DNA of 64,000 nucleotides, taken from sequence record NC_048182.1; one strand, 5' to 3'. The notes below the pieces were generated by a model. That model worked only from the letters and a program-made list of their open reading frames with translations. It made no database searches and was not told where the DNA came from. Numbering within the stretch: position 1 is the stretch's first letter; each line of letters starts with the position of its first letter. This document shows positions 7,086-31,985 of this stretch, piece by piece. The translations under genes and the position numbers were made by a program.

Positions 7086-7105
7086 AAAAGGGGCCGAAGC
7101 CCCTT
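7086..7105 (-). terminator. UUCG-tetraloop hairpin between the 3124-aa stop and the 223-aa SD
   Basis: Minus strand AAGGGGC-TTCG-GCCCCTTTT. Confidence 0.65.
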
Positions 7106-7108
7106 ATG

Positions 7109-10100
7109 TTAAATAAACTCAATATTGAAACGGTTGGTTGGAATACCAGTGGTGTTCGCAACTACTGTCGTATTGAATTCGATAGGAAGTACGTAGTCAT
7201 TACCGTTGTAGTGTACATTAACGTTCACTTTAACCAATAATGTTACATCCTCCAAAGAATCGGCAGAGATCGCTTTAATACCCCATACACCTTCACTGAT
7301 AGCATTGAACTCCAGGTTAGAGGAGATATCATTGTTCAGTGTGAGTGAAGCGTCAGATGTAATATCTGTATCGCCAACCATGACTTTAAAGGCTATTGGT
7401 TTTTGTTCCCAAAGCTGTAAAGACATTGCTGTGGTTTGTTCGGTAACTGCCGGAGCAGCGGCTTCTTCCGCATTCAATTTAAAGCTAAACGGTACAGCAC
7501 TCCAAGTGATGTCATTAACAACAGGTGAGATTTCTGCGTTAACAGTGACCTCGCCTACATTACCATCACCCACTACGGTAAGATCAAAGATACCGTCAGC
7601 GTTATAGACTGTTGACACTGTTACAGCTTTAGCAGGACCTTCTACTGAAACAATGCGAAGATTACCCGCCTCTGGAGCATTAGGGGTTAAGTACTTATCT
7701 CTGGTCAGCGTCAGAGTGACAGGGGTAACCGCATCCAAGGTAGAATCAATCGTGTCAACAGAGAGTGCTGACTTGATTGGAGACCCTGGGTTAGTGAAGA
7801 CCATGTCAGTCAGTTTGTAACTGTCAGTACTACCAGGTACGGCCACAGTAAGCGATATCGTAAATGTACCAGCGGTTTGACCGAGGTTCATTGAGAGACG
7901 ATATTCACCAGGTGTGGTTGCACTGTTATTGGTAAGTGTGTTACTGTACCCAGCCAGCACAGAGCGCCATTTTGGATTTTCAGTAACATCCAGGCTCACT
8001 TTGGTTGCGTTGGTAATTGGATTACCTTCACCGTCTTTCAGCGTAAACAGAATGAGATTGTTTTGCGCTGCAACAACAATAGTGGTATCCTGAGTCACAT
8101 TAATGACATAGTCAACACCAATTTGCGTAATACTGATTGTACCTGTCGTATCCAAGCTCGGAGATACAGAGTTATAAATACGAACAGTTTGATCACCTGT
8201 CACATCAGAAGCGATCTGTCCTACGAAGCGAAGTTTGAAACCTCTTTCCGTTACAGAACCAGGAACAACTTCAACACGTCCGCCTGTAGTTTCAATAACC
8301 ACATTTGGATCGCTAAGATCGACCACACTTCCGCTGTTAACAACAGAACAAGAAACCGCCAACTCATCCCCATACGTACCTGACAGAGTTCCTGTCATTG
8401 CGGAGATAACATAGGACGGCGCACTGGTCTGATAAATCGCAAATGGAACATCAATCGTTGCAGAGTTAATTCCTGGAAGATTTCCACTAGAGCCGGTGAG
8501 CAATACTGGAACCTTAATAACCCCACCACCTTCATATCCAGAAGTTGTTGCTTTAGCACTATAACTCAACGCTAAACCAGAACCACTTGGAAGAGTGACA
8601 CTGAGATTAGGAACAGTTGCTGGTGACCCATAGGCTTGAATCGTTGTCGGTTCGCCTCTGAACACACCCACAATTTTAAACCCACGGTCTGTGTTTGTTC
8701 CTGCGTCTGGATTGTTGGAAACCATCAAAATTCCATCAACTACACCAGCAAAAGGATTTTCCAAGTATGGTGTAAACTCAGCACCATTATAGTCGGCAAT
8801 GATGAACGTACCAGAACCAGTACGGACCAAAGCTTCATCGTTAAGACGATAAGTAAACTCAGTTAACACTTGAATGGAACTGATTGCTGCGTTAGCGACA
8901 ATCTGCCACACTGAAGATGCTTTCTGAATCACGTACGTGTTAGCGGTGACTTCAAGGTCTGTAATCAGGTTAGTAACATCCTCCGTTCCTGCTTTCAGTG
9001 TAAATGGAACACCAGTACCGATATCCCAAACTTTAACGTTAATAGGAGAATCGGTCAATACAAGGTCTCGAGCCGTAGCAGTGAACTTGATTGGCTGAGC
9101 GAAGGTAGTGGTAGCAAACAACCCATCGGTGTATTCATACGTCACGGTGATATTGGAACTATAATCACCGGTCGGGTTTGTGTTAGCCAGAATGATCTTG
9201 TAATCAAAACCACTTGCTGTTTTGGTAACTTGAATACCGCTATCAGCAGTGATCGTAACTTTAGGGTCATTCGTAGGGGTGATATCTCCACCGTATGTCA
9301 GCGTCATTGGCATTGAACCAGTGTCGTTAAACTTGCCAACAATATTACTGGTTTGACTCGCCACCAATGGAAGCTTAGGATGAAGTGGTTGCTGGATAAA
9401 CGTCAGTGTAACCACAGTTGTTTTAGCGACGGTATTCAACAAACGTACGCTATAAGCTATGGTTGTCGTGGTTTCTTCTTGAACGTCAGCGCTGAACTCA
9501 TACTGCATGAGTCTAGGTGCAATCGGTTTAAGAACCCCAAGTACTGATGATGCAGCGGCATTCGGGATAAAGTTGATAAAGTTTGGCGACACGTTTGGTC
9601 TGTTTAATTGGACCGCACTTCCTCGGTCAGCTAAGTTAAGCGTATGTGTAAACACATCACCGAACTTACCGGTAAATGTCGTTGGACTGGATACGATTAC
9701 CTGAGCAGGGGTCTCCAACGTTGTGCTGTAGTAGAACACAGGAATAACAAATGTCGCTGTATTCTTACCCACTACTTCTGCGTCGGTACCGTATTTCAAC
9801 TTGATACTTAAGTTATTAAACTGTACGGCATTGTTACTGTGTTTAAAGGCATAAGTCCATTTACCATCAGTAGCCATTGCACTACTCTGGCTATTGAACC
9901 CTGAGGTTAATCCAGAGAACGTTGCCGTTGTAACAACTCGGTCACCACGATAATAACCATACACTTGAGCACTACAAATGTTGTTAACATTGTTGTTCTT
10001 AACAGCAACTAGACCATCATAGTCAGTGTTGTAGGCTACAGGAACAATCCAGAATTCAGACCCATCATCTTTATCAATTGTTATGTTGATTGTCTTATTA

Positions 10101-13100
10101 ACGGTATAATCACGAACACCATTATTTACAACAACCACAAATTCAACTTGAGTAGCGACAGGACCAGTTACCCCACCTTTCTTACATTGCCAGACATTGT
10201 TAAGCGAATCGGTAGAGATTGCGTCAATGTAGTCGTTAGTAGTTACCTGAACATTTTTAACTGTTCCGGTTAGCCCGTTTACTGTAACACCAAATGGAAG
10301 AGTACCTTTACCCCAGTTACGGGTATTGATATCCGTTACATCTGTAAACGCGACCACATCAGCATTGGTTCCATCCCCAGCGATTGTAAAGATCTGGGTG
10401 TACTCCATGGTGTAAGTAACACCGTTAGCTAGGTAAGAGTACTTAATCTTAACCGGAACATCCACTGCGTCAGAACCATGGTTAGCTGCATTGATTACCG
10501 CATTCCAGCTATTAACAAGTCTCGTTCCTGGTGTGATAATCCCACTTGGTGAAGTAGTGATTGTAAGCCCACCTGAATATGTTGGTAGAGCGCTATCGTC
10601 TCTATAAACAAAATCTGCTGGGACTATAATAGAATCACCCTTAGCACCTGCGATTGGACCTGGTTGAGTGCCCGATGTGAAACGAATATCGGCATCCCAA
10701 ATCCAAACATCGATCTCATAGGTTTGCCAGTTCTTATCCTTAGTTCCCACAGGCCAAAGGTTATAGTTAGTGCCTTTGTAATTGACAGCGGCATTGAACT
10801 TAAATTTACCCGCTTTAAGACCTTTAAATGTAACGTAAGGTCTATTAGCCGGTGAACTGGTGGCATCAGAAACCCATTGAACAACACCCTGTGACTGTGC
10901 AAGGATGTATGCCGCATCGGACCCCCAGGTTCCTGCCTGATAGACACTGACTTTACGGAATGCCTGATCGACAGTTACTGCTACCGAATCTCCAACTAAA
11001 CCGTAAACCGTGCTCGCGCCAGCAGGGGTGGCTGTATATTCAACACCATCCCAAGGGCTGACATTGATTGTGGCCATGTGGGTGTGGTTTTCAGCAACAC
11101 CGTCGATAGTGACTACAAAGTCAAACTGAACTTGGTAAACACCACCCTCTAAAGGAATGGTCGGTTCAGGACGCCATATGTTTCCGTTGTTACCATAAAT
11201 GAACGTGTTACCGGTAATTTTAACGCTGCTAGGAGTAAGAAGTTCACCCGACGCATTACCGACGTAGCATTCAAACGGAATCACTGTGGAAGATTGCATT
11301 ACAGTGCCAGTGGTTGGAATGTCTTTGATATAGAGCTTACTCACATCAACAGTTTGGAATGTTAATGGTTCTAAATCGTAGACGATACCGCTCTTACCGG
11401 TTTCGTAGAACTTACCAGTTAGCGTAGTATCCCCACCGCTACCAGAAATGGAGCTATTCCCAACTTTCCATGCGTTATCTGAAACTAAGGTAGCATTGGA
11501 CATTGTGGTTTGAGCACCACCTGTCAATGCAATCGAGTTAAAGACCCCAAGCATGGGAACAGTACCTTCATAATGAGGGATATCGACAGTAAAGATAAGA
11601 TCAGTTTTAGTTGTCCCTTTAACTTCAAATCGAGTAGCACCAACTAATTTAACAATACCTTTTGCTTTCTTAACTGTCACGGCGACTGGGGAAGCTGGCG
11701 CTGGAGCAGCAAGGATAACATCTGGAGTTGACGCATTAGCAATTGCACCTATTACAGTGAAACTATCACCACTATGCCCAACTCCAACATTGACCGTCCA
11801 AACTCCATCACTACCCATCACTGCGGTGTAACCTTTAGGTTCTGCTACAACTGCATTACCTATGGCTGGAGTAATAGTCGTTTTAAGTCCTTTAACCACC
11901 TTATCCAACAGAACGACACTCTTCCCTTTTTCACTGATCGTAAACTTGAATTGGCGATTACCAGCCGCATCAAGAGTCTGACCAGAAACAGGAACGATGT
12001 TGTACCAGGTAAGCGGGGCGTAGCCAGAACTAAACTCAACGTAGATTGCCGCAGCTGTTGACGTGCTGCCATTATAGGTCGCATTAATGTTGTTAAACGC
12101 ACCGACGTTATTCGCAATGGAGGTACAGAACAGATACATCGAAGTCTGATCAACACCTAAATTACTCATGAACAGCGAAACGTTACCAGCCAATATGTTA
12201 TACGTGATACCTGGATCATCAGTAGGGATAATTACTTTATCAGAACGAATTTCCAGAATAGCACGGAACGCAGAGTTGGGACCCACTTTAGGATAAGGGG
12301 TCTGGTTACTCAAGTTATAAATGGACGTACCGCCAGTGCGGTAAGTTCTCATTCTAACCGCATGGGTTACCTGGGTGACATCTTCAATGTTGTTAGCTTG
12401 ACCATTAAGGAACTCTGGTTTCAGCGTGTAAACAATCGTTGAATTCTGATTGTGGTTGGTTGCGTTGCCGGTAGGACCATTAGTGTTAATGGTGTAACCC
12501 GCATTGCTTTCTACAGGACCACCTGCAACAATAGTCATGCTTGGACTGTTGGTTTGAGTGCTGTATACAACCTTATCACCAGCAGGCTTGCCACGGAAGA
12601 TAGGATAAAGAGTGTAAGTGTTGATTACCGGAGATGCTCCGATTGCACCTAACACAGTTTTCTTATCTGTATCGGAATAGTTGTATCCGATCTTCAACAT
12701 TTTACCATCCCAAGCAGGGAGAGTAAACGTTGCTTCGTAAGTGAGCACTTCATCATTACCATTAGAGGTAACAGTGAACTGATACATTACTTTAGTTGTA
12801 CCGCCTGCGGTTGGACCTGACCAAATTTCCCAATCACTTCCACCATGAGTGATAACATACTGATTAGGAGTGATGGTAACATCTTTAACTGTTGAAGTAA
12901 TATCCCCAGTCGTATCGTTAACCGTAAATGGTAAACGAGTATCCCGTTCAAACATCGCCACGTTAAATGGAGAAATACCTACAACGTGAACGACACTATT
13001 ATTAACAGTGGTGACGTTACCTGAGAAACTGTATTCGACGGTAGAACCTGGTTCGGTAAAGATGCCAGAAATAGCAACAGTTCCGAATGACGGACTGATT

Positions 13101-16100
13101 GTCACAGGGACTTTGAATTTATTCCCGCCAACATGACTAACAGAACCATTAATATCTGCCCCACCTGCAACACTGATCGACTTAAACACAATTGCAGACA
13201 GATCCGCAGGGGTCTGTTTGTAATGCATCATCGCCAATGAGAACTCGATATCGAGATGTTGCCCACCCACTGCTGGGATATCAGTAGCTGATGGTGTAAA
13301 CGTTACAGTAGACCTAGGAACTGGAATTGTAACAGTAACACGGGACCAACGGCCACTCATTCCGGCATCTGTGATTCGACCATCCAGTTGGATTGAATCT
13401 CCAGTATGTCCTGCTGCAAAATCCAGGATAACTTTATTCTGATCGGCAGGATCTTTGATATACGACCACGGTGAGTCTGGAACTATTGCAGAACCGTTAC
13501 CTGGAATAGGTATCACTTTAACAATAAAGGCTGTTGGGTTGGTTAATGTTCTTCCACTTTGCAAGAATGTAAAATGAAGTTCATTATCATCAGCAGAAAC
13601 AGCCGACGCGTCCAATCCACCCAAAGTGGTAGGTGCCACACTTCCAGTGCCCGAATATCTTATCCAGAAATTCCCGTCAGTACTTGTGCCGTCATTTTTA
13701 GGTTCAAACTTATACGCGGAGTTTTTAGTCCAGTAAGCGGTCAGAACGTTGTGGTATCCGGTAGAGGAATAAGCCGCACTGATCTGTGAATAGATCGTTG
13801 TGCCTTGACCATACACCATAGATTGAGCAACGTTATTTGGGGCGCTGGTACTAAACCCAGTTCGAGAATAAAAATACATTTCTTCCAATGGAATACGAAC
13901 ACCATTGGCTACGGCATAGATCACAGACATGGCAGCGCCAGCTGTTGCATCAGCTCGATAGTGAGTTACCTCACCAGTTAAACCATACAACCCACCCGCG
14001 TAACCATAGAGACTTAAGAAGTCGCCGTTGAAATAGCCTTTTTGCGCTGGTTGAGTAACATAGTCAACATTGGCTGTAGTTCCTGGCGAACCGGTCAACG
14101 TAAACTTCATTCCTGTAATTGGAATAGTAGACCCTTGCCATTGGTTCAGCTTACCGGCATTGGGGTGACTTTTCCCCATGAAAGTAATTTTCAGTTTGGT
14201 GTTATCTTCGGAAGGAGTTTGGCTAACAATGGTCATCCATGTTGCCACAGAAGCTGGATCCATTAAGACCTTATCAGCCGCTGCTTTACCACGGTAAACA
14301 ACTTCCACTTCGAATTCACGATTAGTCACAAGAGAGCCAAACAGGAGATCATCTTGTTTGGTGACCTTTAACATCAAACCGTCCCAAGCACCAATGTTAA
14401 ATGTTGCAACATACGAGTGCTCTTCTAGTTCACCATTATAACCAGGAACTTTGAATGTATAGGTGATTTTCTCGGCAACGCCTGCGGTTGGAGCAGTCCA
14501 GATTTCCCAGTTAGTGCCACCAGAAGTAATAATGTTAGTTGTCGGAGTAATAACCACATCGGTCATCTGACTCGTGACATCCACACCTTCTACTTTTACC
14601 TGGAATGGGATATCGGTTCCTTGTTGGAATACGTTTACATTTAACGGAGCATCAATATACTCTACATCAGTCACACGGTTAAATTGAACAGCAAACTCAA
14701 CCGGATAGGTTACAGCAGTACCTGATTCATTAACGCTGACTGTACCAGTAATCGTTGCTGTACCAGTAACTGCCGTTGGTGTGACCAGTGCTTCATAAAG
14801 ACCATTACCTTTATTGGTAATCGTCCCAACAGCGGTACCCTCTCCAGTGATAACCATATCACTAAAGGTAGCTGTGGTGACATCAGTCAGAACGTTATCA
14901 AACTGAAGTTGCTTCAGTGTGAACTGTACAGGAACTGGTTCTGTTTTAGAAACAGAGACTTCGCCGGTAGTCACACCCACCATTGGAGCTTTAGGGACAA
15001 CGATCTGGACATTACGTAAACCAAGGATATCACCGGCTGGAGTCTTAAACGCCCCAGACAGCATAATCCCGGTACCAGTATGACCGTTATCCGTACTCAG
15101 CGTCAACGTACCCACTGCTGGGCTATCGCTGATAGCGATATCATCGTAATACTTAATCAGCGCTTTCGGACCGTTAGAAACGATTGAGGGCTTCCCTACA
15201 AGGGTAAGTCCTGGAATCTCTTCTTCAGTATCAACACGACAAACAAGCACGGAAATATCGTTATGGGTAGACGGAGTGATTTCAGACGTTTGAATTGGGA
15301 CGAGGGTTAGGTTCTCACCAACTTCAGTGGTGTAAGATGAGGTCATTAATGACCAACCTGCATACCCAGGAGAATCAATATACGTTACCGCGTTAACAAA
15401 ACTTCCAACGGTTTCAAATAAGTTCTGCATCCAAATCCCATCGGTATCAAACCCAAGGATTGCCCGTGATGCTTGTGAAGAACCGGTGATGACTAAACGT
15501 GGATCCTGAGGGGTAATGATTTCATGACCAAGACGAATCTGGGTGATTGGGAACTTGTACGTTTGATAGTACTTGGTATCCGTTCTAGCAGGAGCGCCAG
15601 TTACAGTAATCGCTTTAGCCCAGATTTTAATGTAAAACCACATAACAAAGGAAGTTGGAGTTCCGGTGGTGATTCCATCTTTATAGAAAATGATGCGATT
15701 ATAAATCGCATCATTTACTGTCGTTCCGGTAATGGTTACAACCAACAGTTCTTTTTCAAGATCGTCCGATTGACTATTGATAGTTACTCTGATGTTTGCG
15801 CCAGTAGTAGGGGAGATCTTTGTTCCAGGGGAGAACCGTCCCTGGTAAGTAGGTTTAAAATAAAGTTTGCTTGGTGTGTTAAGTGTGCCTTCAGCGGTCC
15901 CCACTAACACTACTTTATAATCAATACCGTCGTATTGAGCGATATTGAAAATGACCTGTCCTTTACAATGATAAACAACACCACCATGTTCAACATCGAA
16001 AGTAAAATCGACAGTAGAATTCATGGATTGGGTTTTGTTACCGTTAACGACACGCCATTTGGTATTATCGGTTATAGTTATGTACTCGTTTGAGATCATA

Positions 16101-16483
16101 ACCACATTGGTAATTGAAGCCGTAATGTCTTCAGCGGGATCAGTTCCCAAGAACATAACTTTAAACGGTATGTCGCCCCACGTTCCTTCATCCCAAACTT
16201 TAACTGATTTGGTTGGCCATGAGACCTGAATTTTTGGATCGTTCACAACGTGAGAGAGGGTAACTGGCATAACCAGTTTGTGAAGCTTTTTGTAAACGAA
16301 TGTCAGGTTCAGCGTATACGTGGAATCCTGGGTGATATCACCCAGGAATTTGTACGTAATAGAATCCTCTTGGATGGTATCGATTTGGACGCTCGGGTGA
16401 GCGTCCAGTGTGATAACCATATCCTTATCGAGGTTGCTGATTGCCTGACCATCTATAGCAAGTTGTTGCTTCAGAGTGGTCAT
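7109..16483 (-). CDS. Giant Ig-like repeat protein, putative virion fibre (3124 aa)
   Basis: Thr/Gly/Val-rich beta sequence; about 7 copies of the V(W/F)x2G..PF.V...D(I/V)T..W...FNI..(W/Y)DG module; several GH(T/S)G modules. Confidence 0.8.
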   Translation of the reverse strand: MTTLKQQLAIDGQAISNLDKDMVITLDAHPSVQIDTIQEDSITYKFLGDITQDSTYTLNLTFVYKKLHKLVMPVTLSHVVNDPKIQVSWPTKSVKVWDEGTWGDIPFKVMFLGTDPAEDITASITNVVMISNEYITITDNTKWRVVNGNKTQSMNSTVDFTFDVEHGGVVYHCKGQVIFNIAQYDGIDYKVVLVGTAEGTLNTPSKLYFKPTYQGRFSPGTKISPTTGANIRVTINSQSDDLEKELLVVTITGTTVNDAIYNRIIFYKDGITTGTPTSFVMWFYIKIWAKAITVTGAPARTDTKYYQTYKFPITQIRLGHEIITPQDPRLVITGSSQASRAILGFDTDGIWMQNLFETVGSFVNAVTYIDSPGYAGWSLMTSSYTTEVGENLTLVPIQTSEITPSTHNDISVLVCRVDTEEEIPGLTLVGKPSIVSNGPKALIKYYDDIAISDSPAVGTLTLSTDNGHTGTGIMLSGAFKTPAGDILGLRNVQIVVPKAPMVGVTTGEVSVSKTEPVPVQFTLKQLQFDNVLTDVTTATFSDMVITGEGTAVGTITNKGNGLYEALVTPTAVTGTATITGTVSVNESGTAVTYPVEFAVQFNRVTDVEYIDAPLNVNVFQQGTDIPFQVKVEGVDVTSQMTDVVITPTTNIITSGGTNWEIWTAPTAGVAEKITYTFKVPGYNGELEEHSYVATFNIGAWDGLMLKVTKQDDLLFGSLVTNREFEVEVVYRGKAAADKVLMDPASVATWMTIVSQTPSEDNTKLKITFMGKSHPNAGKLNQWQGSTIPITGMKFTLTGSPGTTANVDYVTQPAQKGYFNGDFLSLYGYAGGLYGLTGEVTHYRADATAGAAMSVIYAVANGVRIPLEEMYFYSRTGFSTSAPNNVAQSMVYGQGTTIYSQISAAYSSTGYHNVLTAYWTKNSAYKFEPKNDGTSTDGNFWIRYSGTGSVAPTTLGGLDASAVSADDNELHFTFLQSGRTLTNPTAFIVKVIPIPGNGSAIVPDSPWSYIKDPADQNKVILDFAAGHTGDSIQLDGRITDAGMSGRWSRVTVTIPVPRSTVTFTPSATDIPAVGGQHLDIEFSLAMMHYKQTPADLSAIVFKSISVAGGADINGSVSHVGGNKFKVPVTISPSFGTVAISGIFTEPGSTVEYSFSGNVTTVNNSVVHVVGISPFNVAMFERDTRLPFTVNDTTGDITSTVKDVTITPNQYVITHGGSDWEIWSGPTAGGTTKVMYQFTVTSNGNDEVLTYEATFTLPAWDGKMLKIGYNYSDTDKKTVLGAIGASPVINTYTLYPIFRGKPAGDKVVYSTQTNSPSMTIVAGGPVESNAGYTINTNGPTGNATNHNQNSTIVYTLKPEFLNGQANNIEDVTQVTHAVRMRTYRTGGTSIYNLSNQTPYPKVGPNSAFRAILEIRSDKVIIPTDDPGITYNILAGNVSLFMSNLGVDQTSMYLFCTSIANNVGAFNNINATYNGSTSTAAAIYVEFSSGYAPLTWYNIVPVSGQTLDAAGNRQFKFTISEKGKSVVLLDKVVKGLKTTITPAIGNAVVAEPKGYTAVMGSDGVWTVNVGVGHSGDSFTVIGAIANASTPDVILAAPAPASPVAVTVKKAKGIVKLVGATRFEVKGTTKTDLIFTVDIPHYEGTVPMLGVFNSIALTGGAQTTMSNATLVSDNAWKVGNSSISGSGGDTTLTGKFYETGKSGIVYDLEPLTFQTVDVSKLYIKDIPTTGTVMQSSTVIPFECYVGNASGELLTPSSVKITGNTFIYGNNGNIWRPEPTIPLEGGVYQVQFDFVVTIDGVAENHTHMATINVSPWDGVEYTATPAGASTVYGLVGDSVAVTVDQAFRKVSVYQAGTWGSDAAYILAQSQGVVQWVSDATSSPANRPYVTFKGLKAGKFKFNAAVNYKGTNYNLWPVGTKDKNWQTYEIDVWIWDADIRFTSGTQPGPIAGAKGDSIIVPADFVYRDDSALPTYSGGLTITTSPSGIITPGTRLVNSWNAVINAANHGSDAVDVPVKIKYSYLANGVTYTMEYTQIFTIAGDGTNADVVAFTDVTDINTRNWGKGTLPFGVTVNGLTGTVKNVQVTTNDYIDAISTDSLNNVWQCKKGGVTGPVATQVEFVVVVNNGVRDYTVNKTINITIDKDDGSEFWIVPVAYNTDYDGLVAVKNNNVNNICSAQVYGYYRGDRVVTTATFSGLTSGFNSQSSAMATDGKWTYAFKHSNNAVQFNNLSIKLKYGTDAEVVGKNTATFVIPVFYYSTTLETPAQVIVSSPTTFTGKFGDVFTHTLNLADRGSAVQLNRPNVSPNFINFIPNAAASSVLGVLKPIAPRLMQYEFSADVQEETTTTIAYSVRLLNTVAKTTVVTLTFIQQPLHPKLPLVASQTSNIVGKFNDTGSMPMTLTYGGDITPTNDPKVTITADSGIQVTKTASGFDYKIILANTNPTGDYSSNITVTYEYTDGLFATTTFAQPIKFTATARDLVLTDSPINVKVWDIGTGVPFTLKAGTEDVTNLITDLEVTANTYVIQKASSVWQIVANAAISSIQVLTEFTYRLNDEALVRTGSGTFIIADYNGAEFTPYLENPFAGVVDGILMVSNNPDAGTNTDRGFKIVGVFRGEPTTIQAYGSPATVPNLSVTLPSGSGLALSYSAKATTSGYEGGGVIKVPVLLTGSSGNLPGINSATIDVPFAIYQTSAPSYVISAMTGTLSGTYGDELAVSCSVVNSGSVVDLSDPNVVIETTGGRVEVVPGSVTERGFKLRFVGQIASDVTGDQTVRIYNSVSPSLDTTGTISITQIGVDYVINVTQDTTIVVAAQNNLILFTLKDGEGNPITNATKVSLDVTENPKWRSVLAGYSNTLTNNSATTPGEYRLSMNLGQTAGTFTISLTVAVPGSTDSYKLTDMVFTNPGSPIKSALSVDTIDSTLDAVTPVTLTLTRDKYLTPNAPEAGNLRIVSVEGPAKAVTVSTVYNADGIFDLTVVGDGNVGEVTVNAEISPVVNDITWSAVPFSFKLNAEEAAAPAVTEQTTAMSLQLWEQKPIAFKVMVGDTDITSDASLTLNNDISSNLEFNAISEGVWGIKAISADSLEDVTLLVKVNVNVHYNGNDYVLPIEFNTTVVANTTGIPTNRFNIEFI

Positions 16484-16499
16484 GTAACCATTTCCTTTC

Positions 16500-19400
16500 T
16501 TAGTTAGGTAAGTAGACAGACTGATTTAACGTCACAGGATTATCCTGGTTCCCACGACCTGTTGTTTCGAACCCGTCATTTGAAGCCAACGGAGTCGGAA
16601 CCGTAAAGGTAGTGTTAACAACAGTGAGATAATCCACACCTTCCACAGTGACTACCATACTGATTGGGACTGTACCATTGGTCAAGTCTCCAGCCTTACG
16701 GGTTACCACCATAGAGAAGTTATCGCCTGGATACTGTTTCACATTAGCTACTGATTCCACAATCGCGCTGTTAAACGTAATTGTTTTGAACCCGACACCT
16801 TCGATGTTAGCAATATCAACAATCGGTCCACCGTTAGTTCCACGCACCTGAGTCAGATCAAAGAACACTTCAACTGGGTCGTTACCAACTTCGTTAGTGA
16901 TATTTTTGACTGTCAGAGATTCTTGCGGGATGGTTATTTGTGTTGCATTGATGTTGTACCAATTGTTATCAACTCTAATGACACCTTGAAGAGTGACAGT
17001 ACCACCAGTCCACCCTGTTGTCATTGCCACGTAACGCTTTCTATTTCCGCTTGGATCGTTAGGTGCTTGGTTAGATGGAACATTAAGCACCGGCTTTTGG
17101 CTACCAGTAGGAGTGATTACTTCAACGTAGTGTTCATAAGAATCACCAAGTCCATAACCTTCACCCGCTTGGTTACCAATAGTGCCAATCCATTTGGTAT
17201 CTGCGTTTTTGGCCGGAAGAGATGTAGTCCAGAATGCGGAAGTCCAATCAGCTTGTGGTGGTGCTACAAATTTGACGAACACCTGCAAGGTGGATTTCTT
17301 CCCAGGTTGATCAATTAACTCAGCAGTGATGTTATTACTACCCACCACGCCAAGCGCCTGGTTAATACCAGCGACCCAGAAGTTTGTCTGGTCTACAAAC
17401 TGACGACGCAGAGCAAGTGAAATAGTACCAAAGGTGATGGTCCATTTGACATTCGGGTCATTGTTAGCCAGTAACTGGTCACCATACATTAAGGTAAGTG
17501 GGAGTTTAGCCGGAGAAAGAAGACTAATATCCACTGGAGCAGCCGAACTACCACCCACGGTACTTGTGAGTTTCAGTTGCGGAGTCTGCAAAACGACATT
17601 GACCGTGTAATTCTGGTCAATCCCGTTAATGCGGATAATACCGGTAAGAGTACCTGCTCCCACATTACCAGTCGGAACAATATCGATAGAGTACGGGAAG
17701 TTAGCGTCACCACTTGCGCTGATAGGACCAGCAGAAGCAATTTCACCACCCGTAACAATTTCTCCAAATGCTCCGGTAGGGAATGATACCTTAGAACTGC
17801 CTTGCATTTGCTCTAACTTGAATTTAACCGTGATTGGTGTTAACTCAGGGTTATACTCTTGTTTCTCAGTCGTACCAGTAACTGGAGCTTGTGCAATATT
17901 GTTAAAGGTATTATTGACTTTCCACCAACCTTTATAGTTAGCATCACCGGAAGCAATAAACCCTGTGATGTTTAAGCCAGTACCTGTCCAGCCGGTAGTG
18001 ACATCAGCACCAATTAGTTTACGATCAGATGGCGTTACATATTGCATTGGACTCTGTGTAAGTATAGAGTTTCCATTAGCGGGAACGCTGGTTAATTTCA
18101 GATCGCTAAAGTTATCGATGTTCACTATTGTCGCAGCAATACGAACCTGGAACTGAAGCTGTTTAGCCTCATTAGCGACTGCCTGAGTTGTTGACAATGC
18201 TGTTGCGCTTGTACTAGTATTATCAGAAAGAGTAGTCGTCAGTGACGATGTCTTAACTGTACCAGTAGGTACGTAGGTAATGGTTATTGGTGAATTAATA
18301 CTTCCTTTACCATGTGTAATCGCAATCAGTATGTTGTCACCGACTGCATCAAAAATACTTGATGAGCGGGTAAACTTAATATCAGGGCTTGTTGGACGAA
18401 CACGCTGAGTACCGTACCATGCAGTCATTGCTATAGATATGTACTGATTGGTGTGGTATTTGTAGTCTATTCCAAGGACAGGTAACGGCTCAAGTACAAA
18501 CCGAGGAGAGCTGGTAATAGACAGTTCCTCTCCGTTAGACTTATCGCTTTCGAAGTTAACAAACACCTGGACATTATCGAGAGTGTCTTCATCCACTTTC
18601 TTAACGAACTTAAAGTTCATTTTTCCAGAAGCTGAGTTAACATACTCGATGACACCAGCAGGTACAGTGGTAATGGTCACGCCTGTTTGTGTTACGTTAA
18701 ACGTAGTTCCGTTATTGGTGCAGGTATAAGGAACACCGATTGCCGCATCACCGAAACCACCAGTAAATGCTTTTCCACCAGTAAAGGTTAGAACAAGATT
18801 ATTCTTAGCTTTAAAGGTTACCGAAGCAGCTTTAGTGATATACGGCGTCACATTACCCACATTTTGCTTGGTCAGCTGGAATACAGCATCACCTACAAAT
18901 TGTGGAGAACTCGACGTGTGGGTGTACTCTATCACCAACTTACCGTCTTGTACCACGGCCTCGCTAAAGCTTAGCCCAGTAATCGTCGGTGAATTAATGG
19001 TGACTTCTGTCACACCCAACCCAGCCCATTCCAGATCAAATTCAATATGTCCTGTTTCCCCTGGTGCATAAGCAACCGGAGTTGGGGAGTAATTAACAAC
19101 CCAAGTATCACGGTAAGTTGGGAAGCCAGGTCCTGCCCAATAGAACATTTGCTGGACAGGCATATCGATGAAAGTATCGCGGAATGGAATTTTCAGAGCA
19201 TATATGAGGGTCTTAGTTGCGGCCTGGCCACTCACTGGACCGTTAACAACCCAGAACCATTTACCCACCGCTTTATGTTCCTCAGGAATTTCAAGGATCC
19301 AGTCATTAGCTGTAACGTTAGTGACTTCACATAAAGTAGAAATATCCGTAGTACCCGACATAATCGTCAAGGTGTTTGGGGTGATACCATACAGATATTC

Positions 19401-22400
19401 TCTTAATCCAAATGTTGGATTAGCGGTAATACGCGGATAGTCAGAAGGATCGGTAATTGTCATTGGCTGATCGAACTCACCTTTGGCAACTATACCAGGA
19501 CTGACTTCATATTCCACTTTAACGTTTACAGTCTTAGGACCTTTCTCACCCAGTGGAGTCGTAATCTCATAAAGGAAACTAGATACCTTAAACTCAGTGA
19601 TGGTAAAGTCACTTGCAACTGTGAAGGTCAGTTTACTGTCATTAACCGCAACATTATTTCCGTTGTGAGTAATAACTAAACCTGCACTACCTGTATCGAG
19701 GTTACCACCAATAATGGTTCCGATACCTGAGAACTCAAGAGGTGGAACAGCCGTTTTCAGATTGACCGTCAACTCTTGTTTGTGTGTTTCACCATACGCA
19801 GTCAGAATGATATCCGCCGTAAAGGTTTCATCAGCCGTTGCGTCTTTGATTACTTTAACCACAATCTCATCAGCAGAAACACTGACGATCTCAACCCACT
19901 CAGCCGGATTAGCAGTGATGGTCACTGCGGCATGGTTCAGTGGAAGGTTTGCACCTTGGTAGGTGGCAGAAGCACCCAGGTTTACAGTCTCTTGTTCAAA
20001 AGCATCAACCACGTCATCAACCAGAATGAATTCTACTTGAGACGGATCAGCGGCTTTCAATTTCAAAGTTACTGGATAAACAACACCGTCTTCATCAGTA
20101 ATGGTACCTTTAACCAATACATCACCTGTAGTTCCTGTCCCTTTCAGACTAATGAACTGAGTATGAGTTACTGGGTCTTTGATTCCATTAGCCACATAAG
20201 TAGCTGGACCTTCGATGGATGTGTAAACGAAGGTACTAATAAAGCGATACAATCCAGACTTACGAGCCTGAGTTAAGCGGAAGTCCACAGAAGTTGTTTT
20301 CTCTGTGCTGGTATTCACTTCGTTATTATCAATAGTCGAAAGCACCGGAGCGCCTGGGAGGTTTTGAGTAACGAAGCTTACTGGTAAGCGAGAACGATGG
20401 ATAGGAGCGCCATACGTCGCACCAGTGGTTAATTCCACGGTATCCAAAGTAATCGGTGTATTGATTTCAATGGTTCCAGGTTTATGACTCAACTCAACAG
20501 GAACGTGGTAACGACCTACTGAATCACGTTTTAAACCAGCTAATGGAATAGTAGAAGTTACCAACCCACTGCTCTTGTCTCTGATAACCAATTGACCATA
20601 AAGAACTGCAGCATTATCTAAAGTCCAGTTAGGACCTTTGAATGGGGTAGGGGTCGAACCCTGGGTAACCCAGTCGTACTCTGGTTGAGCTACGGTGAAC
20701 AGGAATTCACCAGCAACGTTAGCCTGAGGGACTTTATACTCACTCGCTGCAGTTGTTGATGCAGTGGCGCTGTAAGTGGACAGAGAGTGGTAAGTAGAGT
20801 ACTTGACACCTTTATAAGTGAAATCGAAATAGAAATTCACCCATGCAGTGCTTTTGAATCTGACAACCACACCGCTAGCAACACGTTCAACAATTTCCAA
20901 CTTAGCAGCCGCACCAGGTGAAGTATCACCATCACGCAACGCAATAGCTGTGAAATCAGAACTGGTGATTGGAACAGCGACCTCATTATAGAAAGCATCG
21001 AAGTTCACGTAATAAACATCACCGACTGCCCCACCAAGGTTAACATCTGTGTTACTTCTTGCCATGATGGTCAGAGTGTTGGCCGTACCCACAAGCAGAC
21101 GAACGTAAGAATACGCATACGTTTTGTTCAGTACTGGGGTATCACCACTCGTCGGACTGTACTTACATGAAACAACCAAGTTGGTATTAGCGGAAGCTAC
21201 TGTGGTTTTAATCACAAAGACTTTGCTGAACCCATCAGGGTCGTTGGTTACACTGGTTACTGTGTTTGGAGCAGGGATAGAACTATGATCAGGGTCGTGT
21301 TCAAAGTCCGTGTTAGGGACCAACAATCCTAAACGTTCCATTCTTACTTTGACTGTCAGGGAATTTCCACCAATTACAGAGGTAGGAGCAACCGGAGTGA
21401 CAGTAGCTACTTTTAACGTATTACCGCTAAACTTCAGAATAGTCATTGGAACTTCTACAACCATTTCGGTTTCGAAGCCAGCATCCTGAACAGTAATAGT
21501 AAAGCGCGCAGTACCAGTAACATCTACAGTTGTGTCTTTATAGATCACAGTGTAGGTGTCGTCACTATTGAGTTTGAAGTATGAAGTATTGCTGTTGAGC
21601 ATCAAACCAGTCAGAACCGCAGTATCAGAGATATCGCGACCATCCAACCCACTCAGAACCTTGAACGGTAATTTATACGTCTTACCATCTTCGACTTCAG
21701 CATCCGTTACATCAGCAACCGTAGGGTTACCCTCAACAGTTTGTTGTGTTAGTGTTAATGGGACCGTAATCTTAGCAACGCCTTTGTATTCAAAGATAAC
21801 ACTTGGGCGATGAGTAGTCTCAGCAGTAATTGTCTCCAGGAAGCGATAAGAGATACTCTCAGGATAAACCGTAGAGATACCAACTTTAGTACCTGATGAC
21901 ATTGAGATTTTCAGATTAGGATCATCATTTTCTAACACAACCCCGTTATAGCTAACTTGTTGCTGGAGAAGCGCTGGTGCGTATTGTGTACCAGTGCCCA
22001 CTGTTTCAAACGGAGAAACAGTTTCCAGAACAATCAGCATCACTTCGATCCCTAAGGTTACGTCTTTCCAGTCATATCCTTCAACCGGAGTTGCGTTACC
22101 ATTTTTCACTTTGAACCGCAGTACAACATTACCGCTAGCCAAAGAGGAACCGCCTGTGTAGTTAACAGTGATGGATCCATCACTATTCGGGGTTGTGCCA
22201 TCCACGGTGATTAACGTACCGAGCTGACTATTAGCCAGATCAAGTTCAACGTTATCAGCCAGGTTGTTCGATCCCCAAGAACCTGTGAACTTCATTGAAC
22301 CTGGTTTACCAACACCAACTGTAGCAGAGGCCGCAGCAGGATGGATATCCAGAACCGCATCGTTAAATGGCGCGATAACAAAGTTGGCAGATTGCTCTAA

Positions 22401-25400
22401 GGAGAACTGAATACCTTTAGCAATAACTTTAAAGGCAAACTTAACTGGAGCTGTTACACCAGCCACTTCCGACTTAATGACTTCCCAGACATTCGCATCA
22501 CCGGTATTGAACGCAGTTTGCTGAACGTACTTCCCACCCGTGACAACAATGTCAGTAATGGTACTGGTTAAGTCTACCCCATCATGCATAACCGTAAACG
22601 GTACTTTACCTTTCTGGGATACAACAACATTAGGAGATAAAACATTTTCAATTGTCGGTTTAACGACAGTCGTCAATTGTTTCACTTTCATGTTGAAGGC
22701 GTTGGCTGCAACAGGAGTGTCAATGCTTCTGGCGGTAACAATTACATTGGTCTCTACGTATTCTTGTGTTATGTCTTTCTTGAACGTGAAGTTAATACCG
22801 TCACCAGTAGGGAAATAACTGGCTACAGCAACCTCAGTATCAGGAGCAAGAGAATAAACACGAACAAGGTCATTGGAAGACACACCCCATGCTTTTTCAG
22901 CTAACCCAATACGCACACGACAGTTAAACGGAATGGTATCACCAAACTTACCAGTAATACCTTCATCCTGACTGATGACCAGAACCTTATTACCGTACCC
23001 CAACATAGGGACGTCAAGAAGAACGTAGTCAACACCAGCAACCCCACCTGTTGGGCCAGCAGCAGTTCTGTAAACACGGAACTGGTAGGTGATAGGGTTA
23101 GGTTGTGTTGCAGCAGCGGCTGTACCATCAATAACCATGTAAATCTGGGCTGGTTGGTTGGTAGTAACAGTTCTGACTGTCCAGTAAGGACTTCCACCGT
23201 TTGGTCCGGCTAAAGAGTAGGTGCTTGCAGGGATTGGTTCACCGCGATAGAACACATCGAAATAAATTCCCGAGTTCCCGCCACTCAACACCCCAACAAC
23301 TCTTTCAGGCCACCATGTTAATGAAGTAAAGTTTCCATCACGCACATTGGCATACAGTTCTTGACCGCTATACTGAGCGATGTTAAAACGAACTGTAACA
23401 TTTTTGGTTACCCGATATCCTACATCTCCAACCACAACAGCAAATGTTACATCGGAAGTGATTGGCTTGGTAGGATCACCAGCAATAACAACCCATGTGG
23501 TTAATGCCGCTGGGGCATTGGCCATTTTAACATTTGAGTTATCAACAATACTTACAGACTTAACTGACCAGCCAGACGGTAGTGTAGTGGACCCATTGAC
23601 AGCAACATCAAACGGCAATGGTCCGCGTTCCCATACCTTGGCACTTACCGCATGTGGGTTATCCAGGGTCAACACAGGAACTGCTGCACCTGCACCACGA
23701 AGGTTAACCTTCTGCATATACGTTTTGGTATATGTTACAGACCCGATTATGACCGAGAAAGTAATTGATGCCTGGTAATGAAGATCTTGATACTTGTTGA
23801 TATAAAGGTTACGAAGAGGGAACCGTGTTACTTCTTTGGCTGGGCTATTATTAAGCGGTGTACTGACTACAGTGTTATCGCTTAACGTTATTGTGGTATT
23901 CACATAACTGATTGGAGTACGACCAAATTTCAACTGTCTTTCGACATATCCAATCTGATTCCCAAGCGTTGAAGCATCAATGGTAATCTCATCTGGCTCA
24001 ACTTCACCGACCCAAGTCAACTCAGGTTCAAAGACTTCATAGTAAACATCAAAAGTCTGACGGTTCTTACCTTCCGTACCTGGCGGGTATCCGTTAGGAA
24101 GACTCGTGTTGTTTCCTGCAAAATCAACAGCAAGTTTACCCTTGACATAACCATTGGTCAAGCCATTGATACTTGCGGTAAACTGTGTACCACCTGCTGA
24201 GTTATTAGTTGCACTGACGATGTTGTACGATGCGATTAAGCCCAAATCCAAACGAGAGTAAGTTGTGATTTGACCACCTGGGTTACCCCAAGTAGGGTTA
24301 TCCGCATTACGGGTTTGAGAAGACATCGTTAAGTTGACTTTCAAACCACGTCCAATCGAGATAATTGGAAGTCCATCATCAGCAACTGGGAACGTATCAA
24401 GCGGAACGGTTGCTTTAAACTGCTGTTGGTCCCAAGCTTTGAAGTTGACCGGAGCCATTACTTCAAGAGTTTGTCCAGCAAATGCACCTTTCGTGAAAGT
24501 CACAATGAACTTCATCGTTTTCAGTGTATCTACTTTTGCAGCGTCGATCACCTGATAAACTGGACCAGTAGTAGAAGTAAGAGTCTTGTTACGCACCCAT
24601 ACATCTGGAAGGGTTGACGAAGCCGTCAGTCCATCCATAAGGTTTGTAGTGCCTGACATCAACGTAAATGGCGCAGGATAGTTTCCGTAGATGTCCCAGT
24701 TTGGAGGAGTATCAGGGAGAACAATACGAACGTTAGGAATAACCGACACGTTCATTTTCAAGCGGTTGATATTGTCAGTATACGTATCGAATCCTGGGAG
24801 ATCCCAGCAGAAGACCAACGTGTTGGTTTCTTCTTTCAATGCCGTATAGTTAACAGTGATAGTGGATGTAGCGTTATCAATATCAAAACTATTAACAGAG
24901 ATAACACCTTTCAAATCACTTACACTGTCATTCATAACCGGGACAACAGTCTTTTCCCCACGATAAGTTAGGTTGAACTGAATTGAACCAGTTTCTCCTG
25001 CTTTCAAGAACACAGGGTTTGGTTTATAAGTGCCTGTTAAATGAGCTGGGTTGGCCGGGACACCATACATGTACCACTCGATGGTGTGACTAAGATCAAC
25101 CGTACCTCCACGGAATGGAGCTTTAAAGATCCAATACTGTCTGGAGTACAACCCACCTATTACATCAGCCCCACGGATACACTGAACCCAGTTCACGTTA
25201 GTGGTAGCGAAAGGATCAAGTATCTGACAGAATTCTATCCCTCTGTTAGGGTCATTTTTGAATTCCGTCATTTGAGAAGTAATGTCATTACTGCCAGACG
25301 TAATCTTAAACAGCTGACCAAACTTCTTCCACAAGACCAATGGGTTACCTGGACCACCTCCAACCAAACCAGTAACAACTGGGTAGTCGGCAGGGTTAAC

Positions 25401-28400
25401 ATAAGTAACCGGAACTGCTTGGGTACCTTCGTGAGTTAAACCAGTACCTGGATCGGTATAAGCGTATTTGAAGTTGGCAGTGAACTTAGAGTTAATTGCC
25501 GTGTTCAGAGGGAGCTTACAACGATAGGTTAATGAGGTAGCTGTTTTAGTCTCAATGGTTAAGACATCGGGATCCAGCGCAGTGATAACCAGGTTAGGGT
25601 CATTGACTGGAATGTTGAGTGTGTTTAACTTAACCGTAACCGTACCGGAAGGCTTCACGTCATCATTACCAGCACTGATTGCAGCAGGAGCACTGAGTGT
25701 CAGCGGCCTAACTTTAACATCAAAAATTATAGGACGGGTGTAGTAATCGTAATAAAGTTCTTTTGGATCTTTATACGGGAAGGTATCAAGGTTAATGAAA
25801 CGATCAAACCACAGTGACGCGTTGTACGTTCCAGGCAACATCCCTTTTAAAGTAAAGTAACGCCAGTAGTAACCACCAAAACTAGTAGTCCTGCTAGTGT
25901 ACTCTAATGTTGCCACACCACTAAGGTCACTCTGTTCCGTATTAAGGAAATCACCAGGAGCACCAAAACCACCTGCACGGAATTTCTCAGAAATTAACAC
26001 ATCTAAGGTTTCCCCAACAAACACAGAAAGTGTTGTAGGTTCTGAGTTAATCACTACCTTATATGTCTTCTGGTCCCAAGCTGGAAGCTGGTAGGTGATG
26101 TCGTGGTCAACTGTCCATGGATACCCACGGTAGGTTGAACTGAATGTGGTAGTGACCACGGTATTGGTCGCCACTTGTTCAGCGTACTCGGCACGGTACT
26201 TTTTACCGGTGTAAACAATGTACTTCGATTTGACACCGTTTTGAGTAACTGTACCTGTCGCTGTCCATGTTGATGCCAAATCAAGACCATCGCACATAAA
26301 GCTCAGTGCTGAGAGATCTTTATCAACAAACATGTCAGCCAGCAAGATTGGGTAAACATCTTTCCCGCTTGCTACCATTGCGCTTGAGGTATACCCCAGA
26401 GGAACTTCGACTTCACGTGTATAGGTTTGACCGCCGTACTTATAAGCCAACTGAAGAATCTCTTTGGTCTCAGCACGATTACCAACCCACAACGGCCCAG
26501 CTAATTTGTAGTTAAAGGTATCAGCACCTGTTCCGGTAATAGTCATTACCTGAGCATTTCGGTCAGTCGCGTTATACGACTTAACGTTAATGGTCAGAAG
26601 ACCTTTACCTATTTCGGCATTAGTATCCAGAGGGAGACCGCCAAACAGGATTTCAAGCTTGTATGTACCGGTGTCGTTGTGTTTACCTTCAATCAGGTTA
26701 TCACGATTACCGATTTCAATACCAGGTTCACCCATGATACGTACTTGGATGTCCCCTTCCCAAGACAGCAACTCTGGACTAACTTCCCCAGCGCCTTCTT
26801 GATACTGCCAAATGAACTTACACTGACCAACACCTTCAGCGTCACCAGAAAGAGTAACGATGGTCCACTCTGTGTTATTAGGATCCTTCTTAACCTCAGT
26901 GATCGATACCTGTGCAGGAATCGTTGAGAGGTCTTGCCTAAAGACAGCGGTAGAAGCCGGTAAGTCTTTGTACAGCGGACGGAACCGAACATCACGGGTC
27001 TCGCCTAACACGCCTTCAGAAACTGTCGGAGTAAACTGACAGTAGAAGCGAGGTTGTACGTGACCAACGATATTTAACGTGGTGTCAAAACGGAAGGTCT
27101 GTGGTTCTGCCACACCTTTCAATGTGTACGTCAGTTCCAGGGGAACTGTCACATCAGAAGTGGTTGGAGGAGCACCCACTACTTCAAAGGAGAAGGCGGT
27201 GTACATTTCCACGTACTGGTTAGGGACAGTCTGAGGAACAATACTTTCACGAGTGGTTGGTGCAATAACACCACCGGTACCGCTTTGGTTAAAGTTCAGA
27301 GACTGACGGAAAGTAGCACGGTCATAAATTGACAGAGTTAACTTGTCGTTATTTGTAAGCGTCGGGATTGGAGTTGTAATGCGGGTGTTGAATTGAACCT
27401 TCAACGTTTTAGGCGTGGCCGCCCCAACATCGTAACTAACTTCGATCTCATCCAGATAAGATTTCTTCGTACCAGGAATAGAAGCAAGATCAGCTCTCAG
27501 AACAACGCCATTTCCATCACGAGATGTAATCACAACACCTTGGTCACCAGCAGCGGTGACTTTGTACGACAGACCAGGAGCATTACCAGCCAACTCATAA
27601 TCGCCATATTTAACCTTGATAGGCAAGGTCCCTGTTGTCATCCAGTCGAGTTCAATTTCATCATCGTTAGAAACGAGAGTGAAAGCTTCATCGGAGGAAG
27701 TAGAAATAACAGGCAGCGTTACAATAACGAAATCTTTACCCTCTACCGGAGTCTGACTACCCCCAACACGGTTGAACCGGAATTGAGCAGTATCCTGACC
27801 TTGACCTTTTAAGGTATACGGTAATTGAGAGTTAGTTAATTGACCAATTAACAGGTTAGCTGGGATAATTGATGCAGGATCCAAAGTAACGCCATGAATG
27901 ACATCGCCTTTATATTTGAACACAAATTCTGCAACAGCTTGATCGCCTGCCTTACCTTCCAGTTTAGACTGAACCGGAGTACCAACAAAATCAATACCAT
28001 CAAACTGAGTGATGTTGAACGTAATCTCAGTATCGATAGTGTACGCGTTTCCACCAATTTCATAACTTAGTGTCAGAGGAAGCTTGGTAACAACTGCTTG
28101 TGTCTCATCACCCTTAACAACGTAATAACTGTTAGGAGCAACAAAGGCAACAAAGTTGTTTGTGCCGTTTGGTGTATACAGGGTAATTGGAATTTCTTTA
28201 CCACGTGAATCAACCAATTTAACACGGAACTGCCCGCGGTCATATACTTTCACTTGCGTGACAGGATTTGAACCAACAGCGACAGTAGGAACTTTGATTT
28301 CAGTTGGAACAATAAGTTCATTACTGCTTACGGCCTGAGTATCCGGATCGGTATATTCGGCATGAACAGTAAACTGACAGTTATAGGTCGTACCTTGTAA

Positions 28401-31978: not shown

Positions 31979-31985
31979 TATCTAA

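Follow-up and report, generated by a model that had tools for sequence, protein, structure and literature searches.

The window analysed here, a 64,000-nucleotide (nt) stretch of record NC_048182.1 taken as a whole, is part of the genome of Edwardsiella phage pEt-SU and shows 100% identity to MK689364. It carries two consecutive giant genes on the reverse strand, pETSU_133 upstream and pETSU_132 downstream, the products of which are called pa and pb below. The break between the two proteins falls inside a beta-sandwich domain: the C-terminus of pa appears to carry the first strands of a domain, pb begins with the remainder, and one strand is present on both sides. Related jumbo phages are cut at exactly the same residues, and fused and split forms of the domain occur at one orthologous site. 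From the sequence comparisons and structural models, it is probable (we put it at about 60%) that the split domain is completed in trans, linking pa and pb head to tail.

The junction between pa and pb

From its N- to its C-terminus, pa comprises a conserved region, about 50 beta-sandwich domains and a tail module; pb starts with a head domain at residue 1, continues with beta-sandwich domains and closes with an IPTNRFNIEFI domain at its C-terminus (coordinates of all features are given in Table 1). The C-terminal end of pa reads ...GFETTGRGNQDNPVTLNQSVYLPN and is followed by TAA at 16502–16500. After a 16-nt gap that includes a Shine–Dalgarno (SD)-like sequence, pb opens at ATG 16483 with the N-terminus MTTLKQQLAIDGQAISNLD.... 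The pb frame is +1 relative to that of pa and stays open for 14 codons 5' of the ATG, codons that include no ATG, GTG or TTG and encode nothing domain-like. The ends of the two open reading frames (ORFs), the SD-bearing gap, the downstream ATG and the 14 open codons had all been reported in a preliminary description of this DNA made from the letters alone, and all were recovered.

When tails and heads are aligned as separate rows, the 12 residues that close the tail (PVTLNQSVYLPN) and the 12 that open the head (MTTLKQQLAIDG) share one set of 12 columns, which read PALLQQQVSYNG in an uninterrupted copy of the domain inside pa. These residues correspond to strand B. In every fused copy the tail profile reaches position 42–43 of 45, and the head profile begins at position 2–5, on overlapping residues. 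A Gln in strand B is conserved to at least 90% over tails, heads and fused copies, and its spacing is the same on both sides, at 10 residues after G-x-G and 11 before the N of NxD. A split junction accordingly has strand B once more than a fused copy, and the cut is not a clean one. The preliminary description had proposed that the two genes are split within one repeat domain, with the first strand or strands left on the upstream protein and the rest on the downstream one. The first part stands, as the break lies inside a beta-sandwich domain and not between domains, and so does the placing of the first strands, since the C-terminus of pa has strands A and A' that pb lacks; a clean partition does not, because about 12 residues (strand B with its Gln) are duplicated.

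The two B copies resemble each other as proteins, the mean BLOSUM62 score of tail-B against head-B 8-mers being 9.5, compared with −5.5 ± 6.0 for random 8-mers. Their DNA in pEt-SU is identical at 11 of 36 nt. This indicates that the likeness is selected at the protein level and is not the trace of a recent duplication; duplication or gene conversion at the DNA level was considered and rejected on the same count. Two strands that compete for a single slot would be expected to show a similarity of this kind.

Conservation of the junction in related phages

A tblastn search with the N-terminal 110 amino acids (aa) of pb found eight kinds of jumbo phage, namely pEt-SU itself, Survivor, AH04, N1M2, SXP01, Yubaba/Sureiya, Kc263 and OBP. 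The match starts, in all relatives inspected, at the first codon of a gene lying 11–33 nt past the stop codon of a giant gene. Contigs from IMG/VR and Logan (L010 and L012–L018) were added to this set; a scan of metagenome contigs returned no further loci, and a scan of viral contigs only four. Junctions of the pEt-SU arrangement (tail, stop, SD, start, head; type A) number about 26 in 16 genomes or contigs. The upstream protein ends in ..L.L...[DG]F[EQ]T.G.G....PVTL.Q.V.LP. directly before the stop, and the downstream protein begins M.TLKQ.L..dGQ.ISN.D..MVITLD. An SD-like GGA or AGGA is found 10–18 nt before the ATG or GTG in all junctions but that of Kc263, and the downstream start codon is ATG, with GTG in two cases (L017b/L018b). 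Where an A-type tail is followed by a downstream gene, the head comes within 11–33 nt in 25 of 26 instances.

Conservation is concentrated at this point. When a 2-kb pEt-SU query was compared with Survivor DNA, the junction (window 16289–16559, 81% identity) was the sole island conserved at the level of megablast. A HMMER search with an 85-aa head profile against 1.84 billion (1.84e9) cluster representatives matched 56 clusters; the head domain starts at residue 1–5 in 47 of these, and six have a full internal copy, five of them at about residue 3200–3300 of proteins of 3308–5283 aa. The number and size of the proteins in the chain vary, from 5119/3124 aa in pEt-SU to 5094/1174/1756 in Survivor, 5114/2823/837/1559/421 in L016, 4079/1859/939 in OBP and 3445/396 in AH04. 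The tail peptide, including its hydrophobic positions and the near-invariant Gln, is kept across phages that are otherwise only about 25–30% identical, and the conservation of a terminal peptide over such deep divergence argues that the tail has a binding partner.

Several gene starts in the relatives were revised during this comparison. In the Klebsiella phage N1M2 (L004) the true start is a GTG at 15367 (annotated at 15970), which restores the conserved head N-terminus and the short gap; GTG starts at 15442 in L017 (called at 15469) and 15463 in L018 (called at 15490) likewise restore head N-termini and short gaps. In the Shewanella phage SXP01 (L005), nt 11,925–16,484 hold an unannotated gene with a GTG start that specifies a 1519-aa protein with a type-B head (see below) and a type-A tail, an old tandem paralog with 28% identity to the preceding gene; the next gene truly starts at ATG 16501 (annotated at 16522). 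The last chain member in L016 (25713–26978), L017 (18942–20207) and L018 (18963–20228), a protein of 421 aa, ends in the tail motif ..EGEGETAVVLKQQVNDPNA.

Fused and split forms at one site

The uninterrupted copy that the preliminary description had seen inside pa, at about 21760–22010, is real and far beyond chance, with matches that span about 21651–22037. Residues 4–110 of pb match pa 3298–3402 (BLASTP E 2e-13), and the hidden Markov model (HMM) of the head matches pa 3298–3403 with an independent E-value (iE) of 5e-20. The pa tail in turn matches pa 3224–3302 (BLASTP E 0.003) and 3278–3303 (tail HMM, iE 0.003).

This site is fused in pEt-SU, Survivor, N1M2, Yubaba, SXP01 and L013–L018, eleven fused copies identified with the tail and head profiles, and it is split in other members of the group. 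The C-terminal end of OBP gp207 maps to pa 2913–3303 (E 3e-24) and the N-terminal end of gp206 to pa 3296–3478 (E 1e-22), the latter being a better match than that to pb. In AH04 and Kc263, the first giant has its tail at the site orthologous to pa ~3303 and the next gene starts with a head orthologous to pa ~3296; by alignment, L010 and L012 are also split at the pa ~3303 site. The comparison of fused with split junctions in related phages, which had been suggested beforehand as a check, accordingly finds both forms at one orthologous site. By the logic of gene fusion, this speaks for tail and head acting as a single unit.

Fold and strand assignment

Residues 3160–3500 of pa, which include the fused copy, were modelled with AlphaFold2 from an alignment of 37 rows. 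The model has a mean predicted local distance difference test (pLDDT) score of 91.5 and consists of three all-beta domains of about 100 aa (98–106 aa). Foldseek matched the three-domain model to extracellular cadherin (EC) arrays of cadherins and protocadherins, an RTX-adhesin extender, titin immunoglobulin (Ig) domains and FdeC (E 6e-10 to 2e-8); the cadherin, RTX-adhesin and titin arrays have E ~1e-9 to 1e-10 and a probability of 1.00. The predicted fold class is a tandem Ig/cadherin-like beta-sandwich array. In the numbering of the model, the preceding domain ends with the strand at 105–115, LIVLETVSP forms bridges at 118 and 120–121, FETVGTG a strand at 128–131 and ALLQ/VSY a strand at 137–145, which is the duplicated one; six more strands follow, up to residue 213. 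The A/A'/B segment (116–150) has pLDDT values of 93–98, and this suggests that it is packed and not a floppy linker. A model of pb 1–215 alone has a pLDDT of 88.9 and strands at 2–5, 8–10, 13–15, 22–26 and onwards to 68–78, as in the fused copy from strand B on.

The head alone measures about 78 aa, compared with 98–106 aa for the neighbouring domains. Internal paralogs of the head-type domain have about 22 extra N-terminal positions (A 'LxLxx' and A' 'IxGKxxD'), arranged as L.L.....I.GK..D ahead of the residues that match the duplicated strand. Against a profile built from 16 of these paralogs, the heads align from column ~44–46 of 140 (HMM iE down to 1e-15; hhalign probability 97.9%), from which it follows that the heads lack about 22 N-terminal positions of the domain. 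We infer that the missing positions are strands A and A' and that the duplicated strand is B, mainly from the fused orthologs, the domain lengths and the model.

Database searches by sequence were of little help with these proteins. No Pfam family, be it Big_1/2/3, Cadherin, PKD, FN3 or another, was found in the giants at E ≤ 0.01, apart from a sub-threshold NPCBM stretch, and a PHROG search of the giants gave no match. PDB and Pfam sequence searches with the giants, the head profile, the pa N-terminus and the pb C-terminus returned nothing informative, and a BFVD fold search only uncharacterised relatives. Over window positions 6399–36452 (reverse strand), the products of 1488, 5119, 3124 and 223 aa amount to 9,954 aa (five queries, pa being searched as two pieces) with zero Pfam or PHROG families, despite their confidently modelled beta-sandwich arrays. 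The UniRef name of the Survivor ortholog is 'PA14 domain-containing', and that of Kc263 is automatically annotated as 'attaching and effacing protein'.

A second type of connector

A second domain type is cut in some of the phages. The first giant of N1M2, Yubaba, SXP01 and L013 runs on for about another 100 aa and has ..EYGKSYA.PFKV.... before its stop codon. The downstream gene has a GTG start after 18–21 nt and begins V.NKQSS.VPFKV.S..TG.DIT, so that ..PFKV.. is present on both sides. The corresponding segment of pEt-SU is fused and ends ..VEDGKTYKLPFKVLSGLDGRDIS. In collinear BLAST alignments, the upstream ends of this second connector (type B) fall on pa ..3401–3403 and the downstream proteins start at pa 3389.., so that about 15 residues are shared. 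The strands of this domain in the model are A (221–223), A' (228–230) and B (235–243). The cut thus falls at an equivalent point of the fold in two unrelated domain types, after strand B, and leaves a copy of B on either side. A cut position that recurs in two domain types points to a mechanistic reason rather than to accident.

Translation of pa and pb

The layout of the junction indicates that pa and pb are translated as separate polypeptides, by separate initiation a few nt after termination on one transcript. A joined product was considered as an alternative, in which a +1 frameshift, readthrough of the stop codon or ribosomal bypass would make some of the product a single chain of 8,240 aa. 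The short gap and the open downstream frame of pEt-SU would suit such an event, as would the recurrence, at a few junctions, of the codon for the last upstream amino acid within the gap. The frame relation is, however, not conserved: among 25 type-A junctions the offset is 0 in seven, +1 in five and +2 in 13. Close relatives differ even at the orthologous junction, where the gap is 16 nt (+1) in pEt-SU, L014 and L015, 15 nt (0) in Survivor, L017 and L018 and 17 nt (+2) in L016. Several gaps hold stop codons in the downstream frame, the junctions show no slippery heptamer and no SD 5' of the stop, and most are without a take-off/landing match. All 47 cluster representatives with an N-terminal head begin at the same Met. 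A readthrough product would, moreover, hold two B strands, whereas the natural fused copies hold one. Because all three offsets occur, even at the orthologous junction, and each downstream gene has its own SD and start, frameshifting and readthrough are excluded as a conserved mechanism, and a joined product of any of these kinds is extremely improbable. The lower rank that the preliminary description had given to a +1 frameshift is borne out by the same evidence. Selection appears to keep the stop, the SD and the start but not the frame relation between the two genes.

The last sense codon was also compared with the codons of the gap. A match was found at 10 of 29 junctions, mostly one orthologous Asn codon beside the SD, and frameshift, readthrough and bypass were all rejected on this comparison together with the frame statistics. 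A split intein was rejected as well: the tail, about 40 aa long, is made of beta strands and has no Cys, the head is a beta sandwich with homologs among the internal domains, and there is no intein or Hint match in Pfam. The minimum free energy fold of the junction RNA is unremarkable (z −2.05), and the SD stretch is unpaired.

An indel introduced by sequencing or assembly of the pEt-SU record, which would make the split an artefact, had been singled out for checking in the preliminary description. The same 16-nt gap stands letter for letter in the contigs L014 and L015, which Logan assembled independently from separate runs, and on this ground an artefact is excluded; the split architecture is also present in every relative. 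The chance that the split is an error of the record is negligible.

A proposed link between pa and pb

In the proposed mechanism, which takes up the strand complementation inferred in the preliminary description, the tail of pa would insert into the N-terminal domain of pb and supply the missing strands A and A' in trans, by beta-strand complementation. The first ~11 residues of pb would serve as a built-in placeholder that allows the head to fold. The tail would then either displace the placeholder, by donor-strand exchange, or pack beside the head's own copy of B. B directly follows A' in the native topology and the two B copies covary, and exchange is favoured on these grounds, although as a detail it is less likely than not and much less firm than completion in trans in general. 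Linked in this way, pa and pb would form one fibre of about 8,240 residues and roughly 85 domains, presumably borne by the virion and several hundred nm long if extended. In the relatives the same connector would join two to five consecutive gene products, like the cars of a train. Tight gene spacing would place a finished tail next to a nascent head, which favours cognate pairing; that tail/head pairs diverge within a single phage (four pairs in L016) suggests that they are specific for each other.

The main competing explanation holds pa and pb to be independent, with no binding between them. In this case one ancestral gene would have been split, each half keeping strand B for the solubility of its terminal domain, and the tail would serve another role, such as attachment to the virion, a signal for degradation or assembly, or translational coupling. 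The orthologous fused forms, in which both parts function as one contiguous domain, speak against this explanation. So does the nature of the tail, an incomplete domain fragment (A/A'/B) that is conserved over deep divergence and has a head within the short distance given above in nearly every case. The covariation of cognate strands is a third point: cognate tail-B/head-B pairs have a BLOSUM62 score of 11.8 (permutation p 0.0006), but the permutation test is inflated by orthologous junctions, which lessens its weight in favour of docking.

Other observations weigh against completion in trans and, in part, for independence of the two proteins. The head domain is modelled confidently without A/A', and its fold may be self-sufficient. 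A pb N-terminal domain able to fold by itself had been named beforehand as an argument against complementation, and the pLDDT of 88.9 does count against a simple, obligatory form of it, AlphaFold not being a reliable judge of the matter; the program is known for confident models of incomplete domains. Between tails and the paralog profile the match is weak, with a hhalign E of 0.27 (in the right register) and HMM iE values of 0.005–0.1 in 3 of 20. The reading that A and A' would belong to the head rather than to the preceding domain is drawn from the lengths of the domains and the pattern of the paralogs. SXP01 has a gene with a type-B head after a type-A tail, an arrangement that is attributable to the old tandem duplicate and implies pairing by connector type in that phage, not by adjacency. 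No head-bearing gene follows the last tail-ending protein in L016–L018, which leaves a free connector end. On both counts, adjacency and pairing are not strictly one-to-one. A protein that carries an A-head as well as an A-tail would polymerise with itself unless pairing is specific. Finally, a literature search, which did not cover the OBP proteome paper, returned no virion proteomics or electron microscopy (EM) data on these proteins and no binding data, and no paper describing the proteins or the junction was found in it. EM remarks on two of the phages go no further than a short phrase: N1M2 (PMC7058600) is described with 'no tail fibers visible', and Kc263 (PMC8402661) with a 'tail ... 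with visible fibers'.

Taken with the points in its favour, the existence of pa and pb as non-binding products is unlikely, and completion of the split domain in trans is preferred. A more specific form of the latter is put forward tentatively and is somewhat doubtful as a whole. In it, donor-strand exchange would be chaperone-free and self-primed, the A-A'-B segment of the tail displacing the placeholder, perhaps during translation of the shared mRNA; a defined series of two to five products would be assembled into a megadalton fibre of several hundred nm, with types A and B acting as orthogonal couplings that are fused, split and duplicated in the course of evolution. A covalent lock through the invariant Gln is very improbable.

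Transcription unit and neighbouring genes

A hairpin with a T-run is located 5' of every first giant, followed by the conserved motif GA(A/T)T(T/C)(C/A)TTTGCTT about 50 nt before the ATG; this motif may be a phage promoter. Downstream of pb there is a GC hairpin, which a consensus scan for terminators missed because it is followed by only four T. The same kind of scan found no promoter- or terminator-like site at the pa/pb junction, and the two genes are likely bracketed as one transcription unit, with its start within 31860–31985 and its end at 7086–7103.

The first 100 residues of pa (window ~31560–31859, reverse strand) carry the pattern MAE.IKVNKK.INDP.YTPV...L..RI..LE..G, which is conserved in every first giant of the clade and is not like the beta repeats. 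No PDB or Pfam relative of this N-terminus was found. It is probably the anchor of the fibre. At the other end, the C-terminal ~110 aa of pETSU_131, the gene that follows pb, are related to the C-terminal domain of pb (7112–7450; BLASTP 30% identity, E 3e-12), and both proteins end IPTNRF[ND][IV][EQ]F. A pETSU_131-like gene comes after the last giant in AH04, SXP01, Kc263, OBP, L010, L014 and L015. The shared domain may be a common attachment or tip domain.

Table 1. Features of the pa/pb locus in the pEt-SU window, and type-B split sites in relatives (last row, coordinates of the respective genomes or contigs).
Feature	Position	Strand	Description
pETSU_133 (pa, upstream giant)	16500..31859	−	5119 aa; from the ORF list and identity to MK689364
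pETSU_132 (pb, downstream giant)	7109..16483	−	3124 aa; from the ORF list
TAA and 16-nt gap	16484..16502	−	Gap GAAAGGAAATGGTTAC = 16499–16484; SD-like GAAAGGA = 16499–16493
Tail module	16503..16622	−	pa 5080–5119 (~40 aa); strands A (P-L-A-S), A' (GFETTGRG) and B copy 1 (PVTLNQSVYLPN), assigned from the AlphaFold model of the homologous fused copy
Strand B, upstream copy	16503..16538	−	PVTLNQSVYLPN, with near-invariant Gln; same alignment columns as the first 12 head residues
Head domain	16238..16483	−	pb 1–82; beta sandwich from strand B copy 2 (MTTLKQQLAIDG = 16448–16483); ~20 residues shorter than neighbours
Fused tail and head copy in pa	21744..22037	−	pa 3275–3372; A, A', single B (3295–3306 = 21942–21977) and rest of sandwich
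Fused type-B site	21645..21743	−	pa 3373–3405; strands A, A', B (..TYKLPFKVLSGL) of the next domain; overlap 3389–3405 = 21645–21695
Region upstream of pa	31860..31985	−	Hairpin and T-run 31956–31973; conserved GATTCTTTG(C/T)T motif 31915–31925; SD; from an alignment of eight phages
Hairpin after pb	7086..7103	−	GGGGCTTCGGCCCC then TTTT; read directly from the sequence
pETSU_131	6399..7070	−	223 aa; C-terminal half homologous to the pb C-terminal domain
Type-B split sites	L004 15343–15369; L006 15313–15338; L005 7284–7309; L013 19925–19948

Significance and comparison with known systems

About 10 kb per genome of featureless 'hypothetical protein' gains an annotation, and several mis-called starts are corrected. 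If the docking is true, it would be, to our knowledge, the first viral case of strand complementation or exchange linking large proteins into a fibre, and types A and B would constitute a natural, genetically encoded pair of orthogonal connectors for Ig-like arrays. It would also explain how jumbo phages of the OBP/pEt-SU clade use a varying number of genes to build fibres of 4,000–11,000 residues, and why fission and fusion of the giant genes always hit one structural position. The naturally occurring pairs of fused and split orthologs make the docking hypothesis directly testable with small recombinant fragments.

The long tail fibre of T4 (gp34-gp35-gp36-gp37) is built of trimeric beta-helical and fibrous segments that are joined through dedicated interfaces with the help of chaperones. 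The likeness to the pEt-SU proteins lies in the use of consecutive genes for consecutive segments of one long fibre; T4, however, has no split Ig-like domain between monomeric chains. RTX-adhesin extenders, cadherins, titin and FdeC share the same beads-on-a-string fold, as judged by Foldseek, but are single polypeptides, and the phage proteins are, by Pfam and PDB sequence searches, not members of their sequence families. In the engineered pairs SpyTag/SpyCatcher (from CnaB2) and the split ester-bond domains, an Ig-like domain is divided so that one chain contributes a terminal strand and a second chain the remainder into which it docks, much as proposed here, and a Lys-Asp/Asn or Thr-Gln reactive pair together with a catalytic residue forms the bond. 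The phage heads and tails have no invariant Lys, which speaks against an isopeptide; with respect to an ester-bond pair, the Gln is invariant on both B copies, whereas Thr is not invariant in the tails. On these residue patterns, no covalent chemistry is indicated.

Closer parallels are found among the pili of bacteria. In chaperone–usher pili, a subunit with an incomplete Ig-like fold receives, in trans, the strand it lacks from an end of the next subunit, and the resulting non-covalent link is very stable. The proposed phage link would be similar in that a neighbouring chain would supply what the acceptor Ig fold lacks: the heads are without the ~22 A/A' positions that fused copies and paralogs have, and the tails carry them. 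The polarity is opposite: the pilus subunit misses its C-terminal G strand and receives an N-terminal donor, while the phage head misses N-terminal A/A', would receive a C-terminal donor and keeps a copy of the adjoining strand. Chaperone and usher families were absent, by Pfam, from the proteins searched. In the type V pili of Bacteroidia (FimA/Mfa1), the acceptor's own N-terminal strand fills the groove until protease-mediated exchange lets in donor strands from the C-terminus of a neighbour, giving a head-to-tail polymer of beta-sandwich subunits. This is the closest logic, in which the B strand of the phage head would correspond to the placeholder and that of the tail to the donor copy. 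The phage proteins nevertheless bear no sequence relation to these pilins (no Pfam match), and they have no evident lipoprotein signal or lipobox (MTTLKQQ...) and no gingipain-type site. Type V pili are homopolymers, whereas the phage partners are different giant multi-domain proteins that would be joined once each, in gene order, with displacement of the placeholder a predicted step. The junction between pa and pb belongs to neither pilus family and, by analogy, would work most like the strand complementation of pili.

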